A stretch of 64,000 bases of DNA from Diplonema japonicum (Eukaryota; Protista; Euglenozoa: Diplonemea). Made by a program: the position numbers and the translations under genes. The notes under the pieces were generated by a model that was not told the DNA's origin, made no database searches, and worked only from the letters and a program-made list of their open reading frames with translations. Where the stretch lies: contig OZ025678.1 in NCBI GenBank assembly GCA_964019335.1, positions 372,001 through 436,000 of the forward strand. The letters are read 5' to 3'. Position 1 is the first letter of the stretch. The number at the start of each line of letters is the position of its first letter. Shown piece by piece: positions 17,254 to 28,122 of this stretch.

Positions 17254-17576
17254 TCTTTCAAAAGTAGAAGGGGGTAAGGGAAAAAAAAGGAGACGGTGCT
17301 GGCAGCCCGCACCGGTTTCCGCGACCCCCTCCTTGAAAAACAAGAACAAATAAAAAAAAGTTTTTTCTTTTCTTATAAACAGTGCCGTGTGATGCCCTTG
17401 TTTCTCCCCCTTGCCCCCCCCTTTTTTTTTACGCTTTCGTGTTCAAGGATCAGCAGCAAGACCTGCTTGCATCGTGCGAATACGGAAATAATTACCTTGT
17501 CGAGGGCACGCTTCTATCTCTCTGAAATTTTAGATTGCGTTATCAGCTTCCAACACCACCCACCAGACTTTTCAAG

Positions 17577-18619
17577 ATGCGTTTCTCGTCTGTGCTGCTG
17601 CTGTCGATGGGTGTGATGGCCCAGGGCCTCACTGAGGACTACATCAGGATGAACGCGAAGTCTATGTGGTCCGTGTTCAAGCAGGACTACAACAAGGTGT
17701 ACTCCCCCGCGGAGGAGGGGAGGAGGTACGCGATCTTCTACCAGAACATGCTGAAGGCGGCTGAGATGGGTTCCGAGTACGGAGCCTCCCCCTTCGCGGA
17801 CCTCACCGAGAAGGAGTTCTCCGTGTACCACAGCGCCGGCAACGCCTTCAAGAAGGCCCCCAAGCAGCCCCTGAGGAGTTATGCTGATGTCAAGGTCTCT
17901 GCTGACCCTGTGGATTGGAGGCCCAAGGTACAAGAAAGAAAAAAGATAAAAATAAGACAAAATAAAATTTAAATATTTACACTACTATTCTTTTTTTTTT
18001 TTAGGGAGCCGTGACCAACGTGAAGAACCAGGGCCAGTGCGGGTCGTGCTGGGCATTCTCGACAACCGGGAACGTGGAGGGGCAGTGGTTCCTTGCGGGG
18101 CACACCCTGACCTCTCTGTCTGAGGAGCAGCTCGTGGCTTGCGATAAGAAGGACGACGGGTGCAACGGGGGCCTCCCTGTGGACGCGTACAAGTACATCG
18201 AGAGCGCCGGGGGTCTCGAGACGGAGGGGGACTACCCGTACACCTCGGGGACCGGGAAGGTTGAGGCCTGCAAGTTCGAGTCGACCAAGGTGGCCGTGAA
18301 GATCTCCAGCGGGTCGGTCCTCCCCGGGCACGAGGCCTCGATGCTGACCTGGATGGCGGCGAACGGTCCCATGTCGATCGGTGTGTACGCTGGCGGCCTG
18401 AAGTGGCAGCTGTACACCGGCGGGATCATGAAGGGGTGCGAGGTGAGGCAGCCGGACCACGGTGTCCTCATCGTCGGCTACGGCACCGAGAGCAACGTCC
18501 AGTACTGGATCATCAAGAACTCCTGGGGCGCGAGCTGGGGTGAGAACGGTTACCTCCGTGTCACCTACGGGGACAACTCCTGCAACATCCAGAGCATGCC
18601 TTCCTCCTCCAAGATCTAA
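17577..18619 (+). CDS. Cathepsin L-like papain-family (C1A) cysteine protease (intron 17928-18004)
   Basis: Signal peptide and I29-like prodomain; VDWR|GAVTNVKNQGQCGSCWAF, DHGVLIVGYG and YWIIKNSWG motifs. Confidence 0.95.
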
Positions 18620-18835
18620 ATAATAAAATAAAAGCAGATCGCTAGACACCACCACCCCCCACAATCCCCCACCCCATGATGAACTTTTTGAAAACGTTAC
18701 GGGAGGGGGAAATACGAAACCATTCCCTGTTATTCTTTTTTTCTTTTCTTTTTTAACCCTTGTTCCTTTTTTTTGTATTCGCGGGGTGGGAAAGAGTTCT
18801 CTCTTTTTCCCCCCCCATTTCCAAATTTCTTTTTT

Positions 18836-18884
18836 CAGTGAGTACCCTCCCCCTTGCACACTGAAACTTTATCGAATTTCTTTT
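18836..18884 (+). mobile_element. Very short 3'-terminal remnant of LINE family 2
   Basis: CAGTGAGTACCCTCCCCTTGCACACTGAAACTTTATCGAATTT matches CAGTGAGCACCCCCATGCACACTGAAATTTTATCGAGTTT at ~56939-56978. Confidence 0.7.
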
Positions 18885-20691
18885 AGAAACAAAAAAAAGG
18901 AAAGTCGCATTGCCTGCTTCCCTTTTTTTTTCTTCCAAAACCGCGTGATTTTAAAATCTTTCTTTTACAATTGCTGATATTCATTTTTCTTTTTCTCTCC
19001 CCCCCAATTCTTAATCACTTCAGCTACCTGCACAACAACAACAACATATGGATCCATCGATACTTCAGAAGTACGAGCAAGGGGAGCGCCTCGGGTCCGG
19101 CGGACAGGGGTCAGTGTACAAGGTGGTGAGGAGGGTGGATGGAGGTATCTTTGCGATGAAGGTGTTGGAGGCGCCCGCGGAAGAGGTGCACAAGAAGAAC
19201 GTGGAGGAGGTGCAGCACATGCTGAAGCTGAAACACAAGAACCTTGTTCCCTGCCTTGACTTCTTCGAGACGACAAAGCAGCTGGCAAGGGAATCCCTTG
19301 GGAAGGTGTGGCGGGTTCACATCGTGATGCCCCTGTACGGAAAAGGGGACCTCTGCTCATGCGTCCAAAAGGAGGGACCCCTCTCTCCGGAGAGGGCGGA
19401 CAGGCTCTTGCGGGAGATGGGAGGGGTCCTTCAGTACATTCACAGTGAGGGCTTCATCCACAGGGACGTGAAACCCCAAAACATCATGGTGTCGGGGAAG
19501 GGACCTCTTTCTGCGGCCAGTGTTACTTGCGGCGGGGAAGGGGAGGCAGAGTTCATCCTGGCCGACCTGGGACTGTCGAAGGAGGTGTCCTCCGATGGGG
19601 TAGCGAACTCCTTTGCAGGCACACCAGCTTACATGGCACCCGACTTCTTCAACGGAGGACGGCTACACCAACAAAGTAGACATGTGGGCCCTCGGGGTGA
19701 CTGTGTGCAACGTGGTGCTCCAAGAAGACCTGAGGAATCTCTTTCTGAAGTACCTGCATTCTAACCGGGAGCTTGTGATGGGGAAGCTTCAGACCCACCT
19801 CCCCCCTGCCCTCTTGGGGGTTGTGTCCCGCCTCCTCTCCACCGACCCTTTGGAACGCCCCAGTGCACTGGAGATGCTGCAGACGAGACCCCCTGGGATG
19901 GTTCCTCAGCCGACTGGAATTGTTCTTCTTGCTGTTGGGAGTGTTGGTGGAGAAGAGAGGAAAAGGAAGCTCTGCGTGGCAGTGGGGGCAGGAGCGGAGG
20001 AGGTTCGGGTGGCGGCAGCAAAGGCCTTCTCTTCGATGGGGCAGGAGCTCCTCAGGGTTCGCAGGTTGGAGGTCTTCGACAAGGACTTCGGGGAGTTCGT
20101 GGAGGAGGACGACGGGGACATCGTGTTCGAGGACAAGGGACGGGTCCGTGTCGTGTTTGAAGCACCGCTCCCAACCACCGCTACTTCTTCAACCACCAGT
20201 GACAGCAGCATCAACACGCACCCACCTGCTGCGGACAACACCACCCTCACGAAAGAGGAGGGGAGGCTTGCCTTGGTCAGTGCTGTTTCAAAAGGCGACC
20301 TTGAGGAGATGAGGCATCTTGTTCTGGAGCGGGGTGTTGACCCTGGTGCAACGGACAGCGATGGTTTCACAGCCCTGCACTATGCAGCTCGCGGAAACAA
20401 CTGTGTCGAGGCTGTGGCTGCTCTCGTCTGTTCTTACGACCAGGACCCTGGTGTCAGAAGCAACGATGGTTGGACTCCGGTTCATGAAGCAGCAGAGAAT
20501 GGAAATCTCGAGACAGTTAAATATCTTGTTGAAACTCGCGGTCTCAACGCAGGTGTCAAAAGCCACGATGGTTTGACACCGGTTCATCTAGCAGCAGAGA
20601 AGGGCCACCTCGAGACCGTTAAATATCTTATTGAGATATCGGTTCATCTAGCAGCACAGAAGGGCCACCTCGAGACAGTTAAATATCTTAT

Positions 20692-20734
20692 CCCGGATTT
20701 TATTAAAAGTCTCATTCCCGGGGGAAAAAAAAGA
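20692..20734 (+). mobile_element. 43-bp A-tailed insertion in an ankyrin repeat, 5-bp TSD CTTAT
   Basis: CTTAT at 20687-20691 and 20735-20739 flanks CCCGGATTTT...CCCGGGGGAAAAAAAAGA; it adds 16 in-frame codons absent from sister repeats. Confidence 0.7.
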
Positions 20735-21458
20735 CTTATTGAAACTCGCAGTCAGGAAGCAGGTGTCAAATGCAATGACGGTTGGGCACCGGTTCATCTA
20801 GCAGCACAGAACGGCCACCTCGAGACAGTGAAATATCTTATTGAAACTTGCGGTGGCAACGCAAGTATCCAAAGCAATAATGGTTGCATACCGCTTCATC
20901 TAGCAGCAGAGAACGGCCACCTCGAGACAGTTAAATATCTTGTTGAAACTTGCGGTGGCAAAGCAAGTATCCAAAGCAATAATGGTTGCATACTGCTTCA
21001 TCTAGCAGCAGAGAACGGCCACCTCGAGACAGTTAAATATCTTGTTGAAACTCGCGGTCTCGACGCAGATGTCAAAAACAACAACGGTTGGACATCGGTT
21101 CATCTAGCAGCCCTGAACGGCCACCTTGAGACAGTTAAATATTTTGTTGAAACTCGCGGTTGCAACGCAAGTATCAAGAGCAACGATGGTCGGACACCGC
21201 TTCATCGAGCAGCCCTGAACGGCCACCTCGAGACAGTTAAATATCTAATTGAAACTCGCGGTTGCAACGCAAGTATCAAAAGCAACGATGGTCGGACACC
21301 TCTTCATCGAGCTGCACTAAGCGGCCACCTCGAGACAGTTAAATATCTAATTGAAACTCGCGGTTGCAACGCAAGTATCAAAAGCAACGATGGTCGGACA
21401 CCTCTTCATCGAGCTGCACTAAGCGGCCACCTCGAGACAGTTAAATATCTTATTGAAA

Positions 21459-21521
21459 CAGGAGAGGTGCGGCATCACGCACTCTTTCCGTCTCATACAC
21501 AAAAAAAAAAAAAAAAAAAAA
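21459..21521 (+). mobile_element. Extremely 5'-truncated copy of LINE family 1 (42 nt + A21), 10-bp TSD CTTATTGAAA
   Basis: Identical to 26332-26373 plus a poly(A) tail; TSD copies at 21449-21458 and 21522-21531. Confidence 0.95.
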
Positions 21522-22042
21522 CTTATTGAAATTCACGGTCAGGACGCAGGTGTCAAAAGCAATGACGGTTACACATCGCTTCATCTAGCAGCGGAGAACG
21601 GCCACCTCGAGATAGTTAAATATCTTATTGAAACTCGCGGTTGCAACGCAAGTATCAAAAACAACGATGGTTTGACACCGGTTCATCGAGCTGCAGGGAA
21701 CGGCCATCTTGAGACAGTTAAATATCTAATTGAAACTCGCGGTGAGGACGCAGGTGTCAAATGCTACAATGGTCGGACACCGGTTCATCAAGCAGCACTA
21801 AACGGCCACCTCGAGACAGTTAAATATCTTGTTGAAACTCACGGTCAGGAAGCAGGTGTTAAAAACAACAACGGTTGGACACCGGTTCATCAAGCAGCAC
21901 TAAACGGCCACCTCGAGACAGTTAAATATCTTATTGAAACTCGCGGTTGCAACGCAAGTATCAAAAGCCACGATGGTCGGACACCGGTTCATCTAGCAGC
22001 ACTGAACGGCCACCTCGAGACAGTTAAATATCTTATTGAAAG

Positions 22043-22813
22043 GCGAGTAGGCGGGAGGCTCTGCTCAGGACGGTCTTCCGGTACGCGGCGGGACTGGGGC
22101 AAGTGCCAGTGGTGGTCATGGGGGACATGAATGCCGACGGTGAAAGATCGAAGGCGCTGCACGCCGCAGTAATCGGGGGATGGACCGATGCATCGCTGGA
22201 GTGTGCGGAGAGAGAAGGACGGGATCCACCGGTGACGTATCGGCGCAGCGAGGAGAATCAGGACGGAACGCGGATCGACATGATCCTGCTCAATCAGGTG
22301 GCGGCAACAGGCCTGAGATCGTCGAGCACCGTGGAGACCAGCTTCCCTCAACACTGTACGGTAACGGCGGAGCTGGGGACGGAGGCGTTCAGTCAGGCGT
22401 GCCTCGCATACAGGCTTCCGAAAGCCATCGACGTGGACAGCTGGCCGACGTGGTCCAACGAGGAAGAGGACGAACTGGCGGAGGAGTGCGCACGGGGGTG
22501 TGAGGCGCCTTCCCCGGGGGTGGCAGGGGAGTGGGCTAACGTGACGGCCGCCATGGAGGAATACCTGCTCCGAAGAGACAGCGAAGTGACCCACACGCGA
22601 GGGCATCGGGGAAGGGGTGCTCTCCGGGAACCGATTGTCTCGAAGGTGGCTGTCGAGACCCGGTGCAAAGGGAGCGGGGAAGCGACGCTGCGCCAGGTCC
22701 ACGTCATGAAGGCGTTGAACAAGACGGGGGCCGTCCTGAGGATGATGAGGACAGCGGAGACGACGGGGATCGCACTCGCTGCGTTGCGGGAGCCGCGGAA
22801 ACGAGGCAAGTAG
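22043..22813 (+). pseudogene. LINE APE endonuclease, C-terminal part (5'-truncated, frameshifted relative to the RT near 22790)
   Basis: VVVMGDMNA, TRIDMILL and FPQH motifs of AP-endonuclease-like domains. Confidence 0.8.
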
Positions 22814-22859
22814 GTGTTGGGCCAATGCGAGAAGGCAGAGGACGCTCGCAGGCCCACAC

Positions 22860-25800
22860 TTGCCGGACGACACACAGTGGCCAGTAATACTTCCCTCTCG
22901 AGAACACATGGAAGGACTGGTACGTCTTGTGGGCGAGGTGGGAAGGAACCTCGCGGCCTCGGCAGCATCCGAGAAGATGAGGTCGTGGAGGGGGAGACTG
23001 GAGCGTGAGTTCCAGCGGGGAGGAACGCAGCTGGCGAGGATGGTAAGGGGAGATGAACCGAGATGCGGCCTTACCATGCTGCGGCGAGACGACGGCTCGA
23101 CGACAGCGGATGTGTCGGAGATAGACGATGCGTGCATCGAGGCGTGGGGTCCGGTCATGAGGATGTATGACCGCGACAACCCCGAGCCAGCATGGGCCCC
23201 TTTCGCGGAGCGTTTCGGGCGGTACGTGCCCCACCGAGAACAAGAGCTGGACGACATCACCGCGGACGAGATTAGCGCGGTGCTGAAGACGAGGACGCGC
23301 GGGGCCTGTGGGGTGGACGGATGGCGGCTGAAGGAGCTGAAGAAGATACCAACACCGTTGCTCCAGAGGCTCGCACATTTCTATAACAGGGTGGAGGAGG
23401 AAGGGGCTTGGCCCCCAGCACTCATGACTGCGCTTGTGTCGCTCATTCCGAAGGGGGAAGGAAAACGACCGCTGCAACAACGTCCCATCACCGTGACGTC
23501 GCTGATCTACAGGACATGGGCCACGGTGCGCGTGCTACGATGGCAGGAGGAATGGATTCACCCCACGCAGAGTGGCTTCCGGAAGGGAAAGTCAACGTAC
23601 AACACGGTGATGCAGATCTCGCTGCAGATCGAGGAGTCCCTCCTCACAGGGAAGCCGCTTCACGGCCTGGCCCTGGACTACGCCAAGTGCTTTGACAGGG
23701 TGCCGAGGGAGGTCACACTGAAGCTCCTGGAGACGATGGGAATGTCGGAACGAGTGCTGCGGCCTTTGAGAGCTGTCTACGGCGGGCTCCGGCGGAGGTT
23801 CAAGTACGCCCTGGGTGTGGGCCGTGCCTTTGAGACCACGAATGGTGTGCTACAGGGATGCCCCCTCTCCGTGGTGCTCATCAACGCGCTGATCAGTGTG
23901 TGGGCGCGAGCGATTGAGGGGGAGCATCCAGGCGTGCTCACACCTTCGTATGCGGATGACGGCTACCTGGTTTCTCTGGAAGGACATGCGAAGGTACAGG
24001 CGGCAGCCGACCTTACCAACGAGTTCTGCGTGCTCACTGGCATGGCACTGAACGAGGGGAAGACATTCGCCTTCAGCACGGCCAAGAAAGCGAAGAAGGT
24101 ACGGAACAGCAGGACTGGAGGCCACTTCCCTGCGACAGAGAGGGTCGCGTGTTTGGGGTGCACGCTGGTGACCACGAATAGCGCGAGACAAGTCGATGAG
24201 CGAGTACGGGCGGCGACAAGGAGGGTCGCGAACCTGGGAGGTGTCCCGCTTCCGTTCGACGTAAAGACGATGCTCCATGGATCGATCTGCACGAGCTCCG
24301 TCCTGTACAGCGCACCCTTCAACAGATGCAGTGCGGCCGCCAGGGTCGCGTACGTGGACGAGTCGGTGTTGAGCCTGTGGGGGCACGACACGGGGAGATC
24401 GAGGAGGTGCAACAAGGCGGTGCTGGTGGTTGCGGGGTACTCTCACCGCAACTACATGAACGTAGCGGAGCGGTACCGGAGGGTGCAGTTCGCTGCGGTG
24501 CAGTGCAGGAGAGATGCTGGTCTGGTGACGAGGCTGAACGAGGTGAAAGCCCTCTACGACAAGAGAGGCGTGTCACCTTCCGTTGCAGGGAACTATGCTG
24601 ACGAACGGGGTCCGGTCGGCCTTCTGGTCGCCGACCTGAAGTCAGTGGGACTGATGTGGGAACACGACCTCCGGGCTCTGAGGACCGAGAACGGAGACGT
24701 GGTTGACCCCTTGGCCATGGAGCCACGCGAGTGGGAACACTATGTGCGCGTCCTGCTGAAGAAGCAGGCGTTTGCGGAGGTGGTGAAACTGAGGCCAGAA
24801 TATGCCGGCATCGAAGGGGGCGTGGATTTTGTGGCGACGAACTCGCTCCGCAGGAAGACTGGCTCGTACGCTGTGCAGAGAAGCCTGCTGAAGATCGTGA
24901 CGGCCGGGGTCGTGACGAACGACTACCTGTCACACGCGAGCAGGGGGAACATCGGGGAGGAATGTGAGCTGTGCGAGAGTGGGGAAAGAGAGACCCGGGA
25001 ACACCTGTGGTGGCACTGTGACGCCTACGCCGACATCCGTGCCGAATATGGACTCAACGCTGAGACTGCGGCGGGTTGGCCGAGCTGTCTGCGGACCCTG
25101 GGGGTGATGCCAAAGGACTTCAACACCGGAGATCGCACCCTTCTCGCGGAGAAGGTGCAGGCGATGATGTGCGCGATCAACAGCAAGAGACTTTCCTTTG
25201 TGGACAACAAAAGAACCCTCCGCCTGCGGACACCGCCGTGGGATGCAGTGGCTGGGGTGCCGGGCACCAGGCACGAGTCCCCTTTTAGGGGCAAGTTGCC
25301 GGCGGGCGGGCTGTGGGTCTGGGACGCCAGTCATTTCTTGGCGCTGAACGACTGGCTGTCCATGCTCGAGTGGACGGACGAGGGGCAAATATCAAGTGTC
25401 GAGCTTGCCATCGACTACGAGGCGTTCTCGGGTCTTCGGATCGAGAAGACGGTAGGCTTCCGCCGCCGGACCGTAGGGACGACAGGGCCGCTGACCTTGA
25501 AAGAGAGAAGCGGTGAGCTTTACTTCATGCTGGAACGCATGAGAATGATGAGAGAGAAGTTTGGGAACGAGACCCCGCTGATACCGGCCGAGATGGGTCA
25601 AGTGACGTGCCTGGCGCGGGTGGGTGGCCCGCTGCAGCTCTACGGCTACAGGAGAAGGCCGCGGTTTGTGTCGATGGGCACGACCGCCGTCGTCGAGAAG
25701 ATCCTGCAGAAGGGTGTGAGCGAGCTGTTGGCGGGTACGACGTGGGGGACTGGCCTCTACCCCGAGTACCCCGAGACCGACCACAGCGAGCAGCACTGGG

Positions 25801-26213
25801 CAGACCTTGTTGAGAGGCTGGAGGGGAGAGAGGACGAGGGAGCGGTGCAGGACCCTGTGTACTGCCCCCCGGGGGTGCTCACCTTTACAGGGACGCACTG
25901 GACCGGGAGCACCACGTGCAGGCGACATCGGAAGCCGAAATGCGACCGATGTGGGAACGCGCCGAAGAAGGCCGCGATTACCCTGGATGCGTGCTGCCGC
26001 GCGCACCACCACGAAGCGGATGGGCTGCCCGTGAGGGTATGCGAGGCCCACTCCATGACAGTTTGCGGGAAGTGTTCGTCGCTTGTGCGATGCTGCAAGA
26101 AGCACCATGTGTGCAAAAGGCATGCGGAGAGGACTTGCTCTATATGCAAGGAAGGGACGGAACTGGTGGACCGGTTACCGTCTGCTTGCTGTGCGAAGGG
26201 CCATCATGGCTAG
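22860..26213 (+). CDS. LINE reverse transcriptase with zinc knuckle, ELAIDYE domain and Cys/His-rich C-terminal repeats
   Basis: RPITVTS, QSGFR, LDYAKCFDRV, GVLQGCPLS, YADD and CELC...EHLWWHC motifs. Confidence 0.93.
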   Translation: MPDDTQWPVILPSREHMEGLVRLVGEVGRNLAASAASEKMRSWRGRLEREFQRGGTQLARMVRGDEPRCGLTMLRRDDGSTTADVSEIDDACIEAWGPVMRMYDRDNPEPAWAPFAERFGRYVPHREQELDDITADEISAVLKTRTRGACGVDGWRLKELKKIPTPLLQRLAHFYNRVEEEGAWPPALMTALVSLIPKGEGKRPLQQRPITVTSLIYRTWATVRVLRWQEEWIHPTQSGFRKGKSTYNTVMQISLQIEESLLTGKPLHGLALDYAKCFDRVPREVTLKLLETMGMSERVLRPLRAVYGGLRRRFKYALGVGRAFETTNGVLQGCPLSVVLINALISVWARAIEGEHPGVLTPSYADDGYLVSLEGHAKVQAAADLTNEFCVLTGMALNEGKTFAFSTAKKAKKVRNSRTGGHFPATERVACLGCTLVTTNSARQVDERVRAATRRVANLGGVPLPFDVKTMLHGSICTSSVLYSAPFNRCSAAARVAYVDESVLSLWGHDTGRSRRCNKAVLVVAGYSHRNYMNVAERYRRVQFAAVQCRRDAGLVTRLNEVKALYDKRGVSPSVAGNYADERGPVGLLVADLKSVGLMWEHDLRALRTENGDVVDPLAMEPREWEHYVRVLLKKQAFAEVVKLRPEYAGIEGGVDFVATNSLRRKTGSYAVQRSLLKIVTAGVVTNDYLSHASRGNIGEECELCESGERETREHLWWHCDAYADIRAEYGLNAETAAGWPSCLRTLGVMPKDFNTGDRTLLAEKVQAMMCAINSKRLSFVDNKRTLRLRTPPWDAVAGVPGTRHESPFRGKLPAGGLWVWDASHFLALNDWLSMLEWTDEGQISSVELAIDYEAFSGLRIEKTVGFRRRTVGTTGPLTLKERSGELYFMLERMRMMREKFGNETPLIPAEMGQVTCLARVGGPLQLYGYRRRPRFVSMGTTAVVEKILQKGVSELLAGTTWGTGLYPEYPETDHSEQHWADLVERLEGREDEGAVQDPVYCPPGVLTFTGTHWTGSTTCRRHRKPKCDRCGNAPKKAAITLDACCRAHHHEADGLPVRVCEAHSMTVCGKCSSLVRCCKKHHVCKRHAERTCSICKEGTELVDRLPSACCAKGHHG

Positions 26214-26372
26214 CGGACCGCCAGGCCGCCCGAGCAGTGACTGCCTGAACAAGGCCGCGTCGCCGACGCAACGTCACCCTACACCCTGCACCCTGCACCC
26301 TACGTCCCTTTTCCTACACCCTCCCCTACACCAGGAGAGGTGCGGCATCACGCACTCTTTCCGTCTCATACA

Positions 26373-26408
<36 letters not shown>

Positions 26409-26713
26409 TATTGAAACTCACGGTCAGGACGCAGGTGTCAAAAGCAACGATGATTGGACACCGGTTCATCTAGCAGCCCTGAACGGCCACCTCGAGACAG
26501 TTAAACATCTAATTGAAACTTGCGGTCAAAACTGTGGTGTCAAAACCAACAACGATGAGACACCGCATTCTCTAGCCAAACGGAACGGACACCCCAAGGT
26601 GGTTAGATATCTGTCTGGTATTTTGAGTGAAGAGCAGCCCCCCTCTAAAAAGACATGCCCCTGAGCGCGATTTTATTTTTTAAAGAACGCTTTATGCGCG
26701 AAAGGTTTAAGCA

Positions 26714-27470: not shown

Positions 27471-28122
27471 CTGTAAAACGAATAATGTCGGACGGAAAAA
27501 CTCCCGGACACCAAAAAAAATCCGGACATTTTTCTGTCCGGGAGTTTTTCTGGGAAGAAGTTTTTTTACTTAAGGGGGGTAGCAGCTCCCACCACGTTTG
27601 CCTGGAAGGGTTTTATTCCTTGTGCAGACTTGTGCAGAGCCAAAATGTTCACCCTGCGTGGCAGTTTGAATTTTTCTTCCCCCTTTCAATGCACCAACAA
27701 ACGGCACCCACGGGATCTTTAACTTCTCATAAACCCGTACTTCTTTCGTCAGATTGACCAGTTCGACTACCCAAGGCACGTTGAGCAGCTGGCTTGTGAG
27801 GGGCCCAACTTTGGTGCTGACACCCCCGGCCGGCTCACCCCCGAGAGGTGGAGGAGATAAACTCCTTACACCGGGCCGAGAAGGCCAGTACAAACCCCCG
27901 AAAGCTTCAGCCCCCGAAGGGTGCTAAATCCCGTATTGGGCGACCATCTATTAAGAAAGGTTATAAATAGTGGGCCACACGAAGAAGGCTCGACAAGCTG
28001 ATTGCCTCAGGGGCAGCAAGGGAGGACAACGATGCAAAAAGGGAACCCTGGGGGTTCTTCGCGCGGTTGCTGTTTGCAGCCCAGGCCAGCATTTTTCCGT
28101 CCGGGAGTTTTTCGTTTTACAG
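27471..28122. mobile_element. Non-autonomous Tc1/mariner-type MITE with TA TSD
   Basis: TA|CTGTAAAACGAA ... TTCGTTTTACAG|TA gives a 12-bp perfect TIR, extended by subterminal GGACGGAAAAACTCCCGGAC-type repeats in both orientations. No transposase ORF. Confidence 0.8.

Follow-up and report, generated by a model that had tools for sequence, protein, structure and literature searches.

Site-specific long interspersed nuclear elements (LINEs) serve as models for the choice of a safe target and are the basis of RNA-templated gene-insertion tools. The target classes reviewed in PMC4640811 comprise RNA genes, spliced-leader exons, transposons, microsatellites and telomeres, and the target-specific groups with an apurinic/apyrimidinic endonuclease-like (APE) domain named there are the R1 and Tx1 clades. 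A hot spot in protein-coding sequence is described in PMC7563717, which cites Bringaud 2002: the LINE ingi and its non-autonomous partner RIME occupy one position in the coding sequence of the retrotransposon hot spot (RHS) genes of trypanosomes. This is the closest precedent, although a partial one, for the system reported here. The window, which is the whole stretch of 64,000 nucleotides of Diplonema japonicum analysed in this work (OZ025678.1, positions 372,001 to 436,000; C31:372001-436000 in a genome of 62.5 Mb and 132 contigs), contains a LINE that we interpret as a sequence-specific APE-type element of a diplonemid, inserting at one position of ankyrin-repeat coding DNA; we put the probability of this reading at about 87%. 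The initial annotation of this DNA knew of no description of such a target. No description of an ankyrin target for a site-specific retrotransposon was found in the literature searched (non-LTR with ankyrin; diplonemids with retrotransposon), and the D. papillatum genome paper (PMC10161547) makes no mention of ankyrin.

Three A-tailed insertions claimed in the initial annotation were all found at its positions within the ankyrin-repeat array of one host gene:

20270..26664, plus strand: ankyrin-repeat array of the host gene (Pfam Ank_2, PF12796, E 8.8e-46), with three interruptions
20687..20739, plus strand: insert A with its target site duplications (TSDs); insert at 20692-20734, CTTAT at 20687-20691 and 20735-20739
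21449..21531, plus strand: insert B with its TSDs, CTTATTGAAA at 21449-21458 and 21522-21531
22032..26416, plus strand: insert C with its TSDs, CTTATTGAAA at 22032-22041 and 26407-26416

The units of the array are 102 bp each and encode ...NGHLETVKYL(I/V)ET..., and the tails of all three inserts adjoin the C of AAATAT^CTTATTGAAA, that is, the Tyr/Leu codon boundary of V-K-Y-L-I-E-T. The 16-mer target occurs 17 times in the window (up to 2 mismatches), always in the kinase/ankyrin gene and with 102-bp spacing. Insert B (21459-21521) consists of the last 42 nt of the LINE (21459-21500) followed by A21 (21501-21521), and insert C (22042-26406) of a 5'-truncated LINE of 4,332 nt (22042-26373) followed by A33 (26374-26406). 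The 42-mers at the two 3' ends are identical, with 0 matches expected by chance, and both inserts are flanked by CTTATTGAAA, which bears out the claim that B and C are the same element with an identical 10-bp TSD. Insert A is built differently, from a core AAAAGTCTCATTCCCG followed by GGGG, A8 and GA; since the insert and one TSD copy add up to 48 nt (16 codons), it is in frame, and the open reading frame (ORF) reads through it.

A genome search with tabulated flanks, as the initial annotation had proposed, was carried out over the whole 62.5 Mb. Allowing up to 3 mismatches, the pattern of the 42-mer plus AAAA gave 19 genomic matches, and in all 19 the tail is followed by (C)TYRTYGAAA of an ankyrin unit; among these downstream flanks one lacks the C and one reads CTAATCGAAA. 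A more sensitive BLAST-type search with the last 160 nt of the LINE, in which all 20 candidates were scored, returned 21 places, 20 of them adjoining the ankyrin site, with a place on contig C112 as the sole exception. Together with an additional 23-nt relic seen in a fetched locus, the 3' end of the LINE has 22 occurrences altogether. Independent events were told apart by their flanks, tails and 5' ends, and the 22 occurrences were counted as 14 such events:

E1, C31:298169-305541: full length, 7,373 nt, A41; TSD CTTGTTGAAA(C)
E2, insert C of the window: 4,332 nt; TSD CTTATTGAAA
E3, C60: 4,140 nt, at two places 9,131 bp apart; TSD CTTGTTGA
E4, C105:276xxx: about 168 nt; TSD CTCGTCGAAA
E5, insert B of the window: 42 nt; TSD CTTATTGAAA
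E6, C31:297950: 42 nt
E7, C68:348710: 42 nt; TSD CTCGTCGAAA
E8, C68:348930: 42 nt, with 51 extra nt before it
E9 to E11, C72, C68 and C105: 40-41 nt
E12, C60: old 42-nt copy, now at 8 places of C60 through gene duplication
E13, C72: 23-nt relic
E14, C112:167042: off-target and intergenic; TSD GTTAAAG

Thirteen of the 14 events lie at one nucleotide of the ankyrin unit and in sense orientation, so that most copies are not at unrelated A/T-rich sites. The strict pattern of an intact site, AARTAYCTYRTYGAAAC, has only 157 occurrences in the genome, which places the census far beyond chance. At one C68 locus, three successive ankyrin units are all occupied. Among the sampled units, all interruptions at KYL(I/V)E have their 3' (tail) junction at the nick, and otherwise only natural gene ends and a few small deletions were seen at that site, other positions of the unit not having been scanned systematically. 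Two minus-strand matches of A10 plus the site (C17 and C37) were set aside as chance, having no ankyrin context. Different A-tailed sequences at C68:348440 (L026:3440-3480) and C11:547690 (L044:1540-1580) were also observed to have alike flanks, GAGACTATTTAAGGGTGC and GATTCTTTAAGGGTGC, which may reflect either another favoured target of retroposons or the beginning of a different repeat.

The element is an APE-type non-LTR retrotransposon, having a reverse transcriptase (RT), an APE domain, a poly(A) tail, TSDs and variable 5' truncation and no long terminal repeats. The window copy contains the following parts:

22042..22813, plus strand: C-terminal part of the APE domain and linker (weak match to PF03372); the frame ends at 22813
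22860..26213, plus strand: ORF of 1,117 aa with RT, a CCHC motif and a Cys/His-rich C-terminal tail (Pfam PF00078, E 4e-20)
26214..26373, plus strand: 3' untranslated region (UTR) of 160 nt, composed of a C/T-rich tract and then the 42-nt terminal module
26334..26362, plus strand: stable hairpin in the 42-nt module (-17.8 kcal/mol, z -5.3; 0 of 200 shuffles fold as well)

The full-length copy, 93 kb upstream (7,373 nt plus A41, C31:298169-305541), has the order spliced-leader head, ORF1, 2A, APE, RT, CCHC, Cys/His block and 3' UTR. Its ORF1 region is spread over several frames and ends in a Cys-rich motif; a 2A motif, LLLLAGDVERNPGP (GDVERNPGP), precedes APE at L020:5797-5823, and a Pfam search of the stretch L020:5551-6717 detected the APE domain (PF03372) with 27.9 bits, the cut-off being 24.5. 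Between the window copy and the full-length copy there are 5 substitutions, one 1-nt indel and one 7-nt indel, and this identity of 99.7% indicates that the copies are young. The frame of the 1,117-aa ORF is offset by +1 from that of the APE part, and the two frames overlap by about 20 codons near 22750-22860 of the window (L020:6700-7000). When compared with solved structures, the RT matched human L1 ORF2p at 2e-18 and R2 at 3e-8 and is thus nearer to L1 ORF2p; the APE part, compared by sequence, had no meaningful match among them. Pfam found RVT_1 alone in the 1,117-aa ORF, with nothing in the last 337 aa and no RNase H, and detected no domain in ORF1 or the Cys/His tail. Scores of the C-terminal tail in the protein atlas were all below 0.9, a range that is uninformative. 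Its last ~150 residues occur in this LINE family only within this genome and again in D. papillatum LINEs; this conservation makes them a marker of a lineage of diplonemid LINEs and does not prove that they read the target, and it weakened the Cys/His tail as a candidate for a family-specific target reader. The RT protein is 99-100% identical to D. japonicum Trinity transcripts (EukProt EP01064), so the LINE is transcribed. At 23531, a variant with an insertion of 9 nt corresponds to the MRK insertion of one transcript protein (P0001).

In the mechanism that we propose, the bottom strand would be nicked at 5'-...CAAYRAG^ATATTT-3', a position derived from the junctions; on the coding strand it would fall at Tyr^Leu of ...V-K-Y^L-(I/V)-E-T..., in AAATAT^CTYRTYGAAAC. 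The freed 3'-OH would then prime reverse transcription on the poly(A) tail of the element RNA (target-primed reverse transcription, TPRT), and the top strand would be cut about 10 nt downstream, after GAAA, to give a TSD of 8-11 bp. All copies share the ankyrin-sense orientation because the target is asymmetric. This orientation may allow co-transcription with the host polycistron, as would be expected in a euglenozoan, and the spliced-leader head would fit such a route. The multicopy repeat would be a tolerated landing pad, comparable to rDNA for R1 and R2, with at least 157 intact strict sites remaining. The same nick may also serve the 42-nt hairpin mini-copies, a 545-nt element resembling short interspersed nuclear elements (SINE-like) and at least one further short family. 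The anatomy of the element, its junctions and TSDs, the census of sites, the transcription, the spliced-leader head and the hairpin are shown directly, and from the sequence we infer the exact nicks, a protein domain that reads the site and the mobilisation of the other families in trans.

At least two, and probably three, other A-tailed families use this nick. Element 2b is the 545-nt, non-coding, SINE-like element; three of its four copies are at the ankyrin site with TSDs of 10-11 bp, and two of the on-site copies have a common 5' end. It showed no similarity to the LINE and belongs to no Rfam family, and Rfam likewise gave none for the full-length LINE locus. Family A comprises insert A of the window and one old event that has spread through the C60 genes, with an identical nick. 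An unclassified A12-tailed sequence is at the nick at C60:40264. Passengers that lack the 3' module of the LINE suggest either a relaxed, tail-based choice of template or several enzymes making the same first nick.

Several observations weigh against site-specific insertion by this LINE. Event E14 (C112:167042, TSD GTTAAAG) is an off-target insertion. In every assembled long copy the frame is broken between APE and RT, with additional breaks in ORF1 and APE in the full-length copy, so that no copy is shown to be autonomous. The TSD of family A is only 4-5 bp, which hints at more than one enzyme acting at the site and, for this family, favours the second of the two options above. The genome also holds many other LINE families (65-76% nucleotide identity in RT) whose 3' junctions lie outside the census, and the on-target figures apply to this family only. 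The frame breaks, the TSD length of family A, the other LINE families and the use of the nick by several unrelated A-tailed RNAs with no common 3' sequence would all suit an account in which specificity comes from another autonomous element, while the LINE would be a passenger mobilised in trans, as would the 42-nt minis, the 545-nt element and family A. We consider this unlikely, since this family is the sole LINE seen at the site and its young copies, 99.7% identical to each other, are transcribed. The frame break itself could stem from misassembly or be confined to certain copies: contigs from public runs have one letter fewer at 22799, inside the frame overlap, and some of them also at 22877. 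The claim that the LINE is specialised for ankyrin coding DNA is therefore kept for 13 of 14 events and qualified by the off-target copy and by the other A-tailed families at the same nick.

Independence of the insertions rests on several features of the junctions. TSD pairs agree within a locus, differ between loci and match the local variant of the repeat; there are five variants, including CTTATTGAAA, CTTGTTGAAA, CTCGTCGAAA and CTCGTTGAAA. The TSDs are 8-11 bp long, mostly 10 bp, and the tails range from about A10 to A58. At least six element lengths were found (7,373, 4,332, 4,140, about 168, 40-42 and 23 nt). The 40-nt inserts are 92-100% identical between loci, whereas the 100-nt flanks on each side are just 57-84% identical, and the inserts therefore postdate the divergence of the units in which they lie. 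The 5' junctions of E3, E4, E9 and E12 recur in public-run contigs from other studies and are thus not assembly artefacts. These data bear on a second account, in which one ancestral insertion was multiplied through duplication, either tandem or segmental, and through gene conversion between ankyrin units, and deletions produced the short forms. Duplication does explain part of the copy number: the C60 array has eight near-identical 42-nt copies with the same extra G and a decayed tail, which were discounted in the copy counts as products of gene duplication, the 4.1-kb copy occurs at two places separated by 9,131 bp, and the window gene has its own paralogue 93 kb upstream. However, the six or more 5' truncation points, the matching TSD pair of each locus in five sequence variants and the contrast between inserts and flanks all oppose a single origin, which would also need repeated deletions starting exactly at the boundary of target and element. 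This account is already largely refuted and, in our estimate, very improbable. The locus-specific TSD pairs, differing tails and divergent flanks equally contradict a derivation of the short copy from the long one by deletion or duplication, a possibility that the initial annotation had raised. The least probable account, nonspecific insertion at random A/T-rich sites with selection leaving survivors only in dispensable ankyrin repeats, can draw on the multicopy, disruption-tolerant nature of the arrays and on the one off-target copy, but selection cannot account for the exact nucleotide, the single orientation and the unvarying TSD register of 13 events, or for unrelated families at the same base, and the sampled KYL(I/V)E interruptions all have their tail junction at the nick.

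The events are thus independent, as had been claimed, but the further claim of very different 5' truncations does not extend to the 42-nt form, which is a recurrent discrete form and does not result from random truncation. In eight of the 14 events the element begins no more than 2 nt away from one base (CAGGAGAGG), at the foot of the hairpin, and insert B contains the same hairpin at 21461-21489. Three events have extra letters between the TSD and the CAGGAGAGG base, E6 a single T, E12 a single G and E8 a stretch of 51 nt. The 51 nt of E8 (C68:348879-348929; L026:3880-3930), which read AGTATGGGTTTTCTCC...CCAATCAGC and lie between the TSD and the 42-nt mini, look like a template jump. Extra letters at a 5' junction are made by RT at the true 5' end of an RNA or on a template jump. 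In view of the shared start and the extra letters, we suspect that the 42-nt copies derive from a discrete short RNA or from a strong RT stop at the hairpin foot. An origin of the minis by trans-splicing at the CAG ahead of the 42-mer was rejected, since they have no spliced leader and include the CAG.

A spliced leader is present at the head of the full-length copy, which indicates that the template RNA had been trans-spliced. This head reads AAA CTGTACTTT GTA CTGTACTTT A CTGTA CTGTACTTTATTG, a stuttered partial leader at L020:3170-3212 (C31:298169-298211) with CTGTACTTT three to four times; the stutter reflects either RT slippage on the leader or relics of repeated cycles of splicing and retroposition. 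Its CTGTACTTTATTG is the 3' end of the spliced leader of this genome. The leader known as 'Euglenozoa 14' is presumably that of Diplonema. The leader of this genome is two letters off the 'Euglenozoa 14' leader of PMC3795323, and together with the transcript matches it identifies the host as D. japonicum or a very close relative. The sequence CTGTACTTTATTGGT has 204 occurrences dispersed over many contigs, and each of four copies inspected (L055-L058) is preceded by ACCAACGATTCTAAAGCTACAGTTT, making up the full 38-nt spliced leader ACCAACGATTCTAAAGCTACAGTTTCTGTACTTTATTG. The sequence downstream is different in each of the four, and two of them follow an A-run. The dispersed leader copies suggest abundant retrocopies of trans-spliced RNAs.

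The host gene of the window has a kinase domain upstream of the ankyrin array:

19048..19764, plus strand: protein kinase domain of the host gene (Pfam PF00069, E 1.2e-36; from the ORF list)

Relative to the ankyrin part, the frame of the gene shifts around 19613-19764, inside the kinase domain. The upstream paralogue of the kinase gene is a single uninterrupted ORF of 621 aa; the frame change denotes either a pseudogene or an assembly indel. The paralogue belongs to a segmental duplication in which C31:295000-307045 (L020 and L001), 93 kb upstream, corresponds to window 17500-26700 and which holds a gene pair, cathepsin-like and kinase-ankyrin. At approximately the repeat position of insert A the paralogue has a 42-nt mini, and about two units further on it has the full-length LINE. 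Within the window array, the ankyrin unit at 20636-20690, adjoining insert A, is about 48 nt short (KYLIEISVHLAAQKGH...) owing to a deletion. Beyond the 3' end of the gene, at 27480-27560, short inverted repeats around CCCGGAC and GTCCGGGAG, with A/T runs between them, loosely resemble the CCCGG...CCCGGG ends of insert A. The intergenic DNA of the window has more than 60 homopolymer A or T runs of 14-47 nt per 64 kb, and this abundance makes A-runs alone poor evidence of retroposition in this genome.

Reading of a protein-coding repeat motif to the single nucleotide by an APE-type LINE would widen the known target range, and the ankyrin genes would become, beside RHS, a second euglenozoan gene family acting as a retroelement sink. 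The insertions explain many of the interrupted ankyrin genes here and are relevant to genome annotation. The system is compact, with a target of ~17 nt, a 42-nt hairpin 3' module and few young copies, and appears suited to studying the long-sequence specificity of APE and the minimal RNA needs of TPRT. A broader picture is speculative, and we would sooner doubt than adopt it: the 102-bp ankyrin units and a retroposon guild of the LINE, the 545-nt SINE-like element, family A and the 42-nt mini would form a diplonemid counterpart of the RHS sink, the 42-nt hairpin with poly(A) would be a free-standing RNA and a sufficient TPRT substrate, and the APE-type enzyme would recognise a protein-coding motif of ~17 nt. 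If this were true, the 42-nt hairpin mini would be among the shortest retroposons known to us.

Compared with known systems, the diplonemid LINE resembles R2 and the kinetoplastid elements SLACS, CZAR and CRE, which are specific to spliced-leader genes, as a site-specific LINE in multicopy genes, with a probable dependence on host transcription; the hosts of these elements are euglenozoans or animals. However, those elements have a restriction-like endonuclease and RNA-gene targets, whereas the diplonemid LINE has APE and an RT nearer to L1 than to R2. With R1, TRAS and SART of the R1 clade and with the Tx1-clade elements it shares APE and RT, one position in a multicopy sequence, a fixed orientation, a poly(A) tail, TSDs that are short and a low copy number. 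This is a likeness by features only. In contrast to these clades, its target is a protein-coding repeat, and it has an N-terminal 2A, a spliced-leader head and a Cys/His tail common to Diplonema LINEs.

The best protein matches beyond D. japonicum are LINEs of D. (Paradiplonema) papillatum, with 32-38% identity in alignments that cover as much as 94% of the query. Annotated as 'R2' or 'jockey' pol, these have the same APE-RT-CCHC order and Cys/His block, and some have 2A-like N-termini. In one D. papillatum gene model (P0044) a LINE RT, ending after ...TRPWELAS, is joined to ankyrin repeats; it was rejected as support, since the protein shows the junction of the two parts to lie elsewhere than at the equivalent of KYL(I/V)E. 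No Trypanosoma protein was among the 75 RT-protein matches of a search limited to candidates sharing short words.

L1Tc has an N-terminal 2A, and the diplonemid LINE similarly carries a 2A peptide (GDVERNPGP) ahead of APE. On the other hand, L1Tc has RNase H, which was not detected by Pfam in the diplonemid LINE, and L1Tc and ingi show merely a relative site preference genome-wide. The likeness to ingi/RIME and L1Tc/NARTc in the RHS genes lies in the euglenozoan host, the single hot spot in coding sequence that a LINE shares with non-autonomous partners and the many pseudogenised members of the gene family. The target differs, being kinase-linked ankyrin repeats (PF12796) and not the RHS family. 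While an RHS gene offers one site, the ankyrin genes offer one per 102-bp unit, and several insertions can therefore stack in a single gene.

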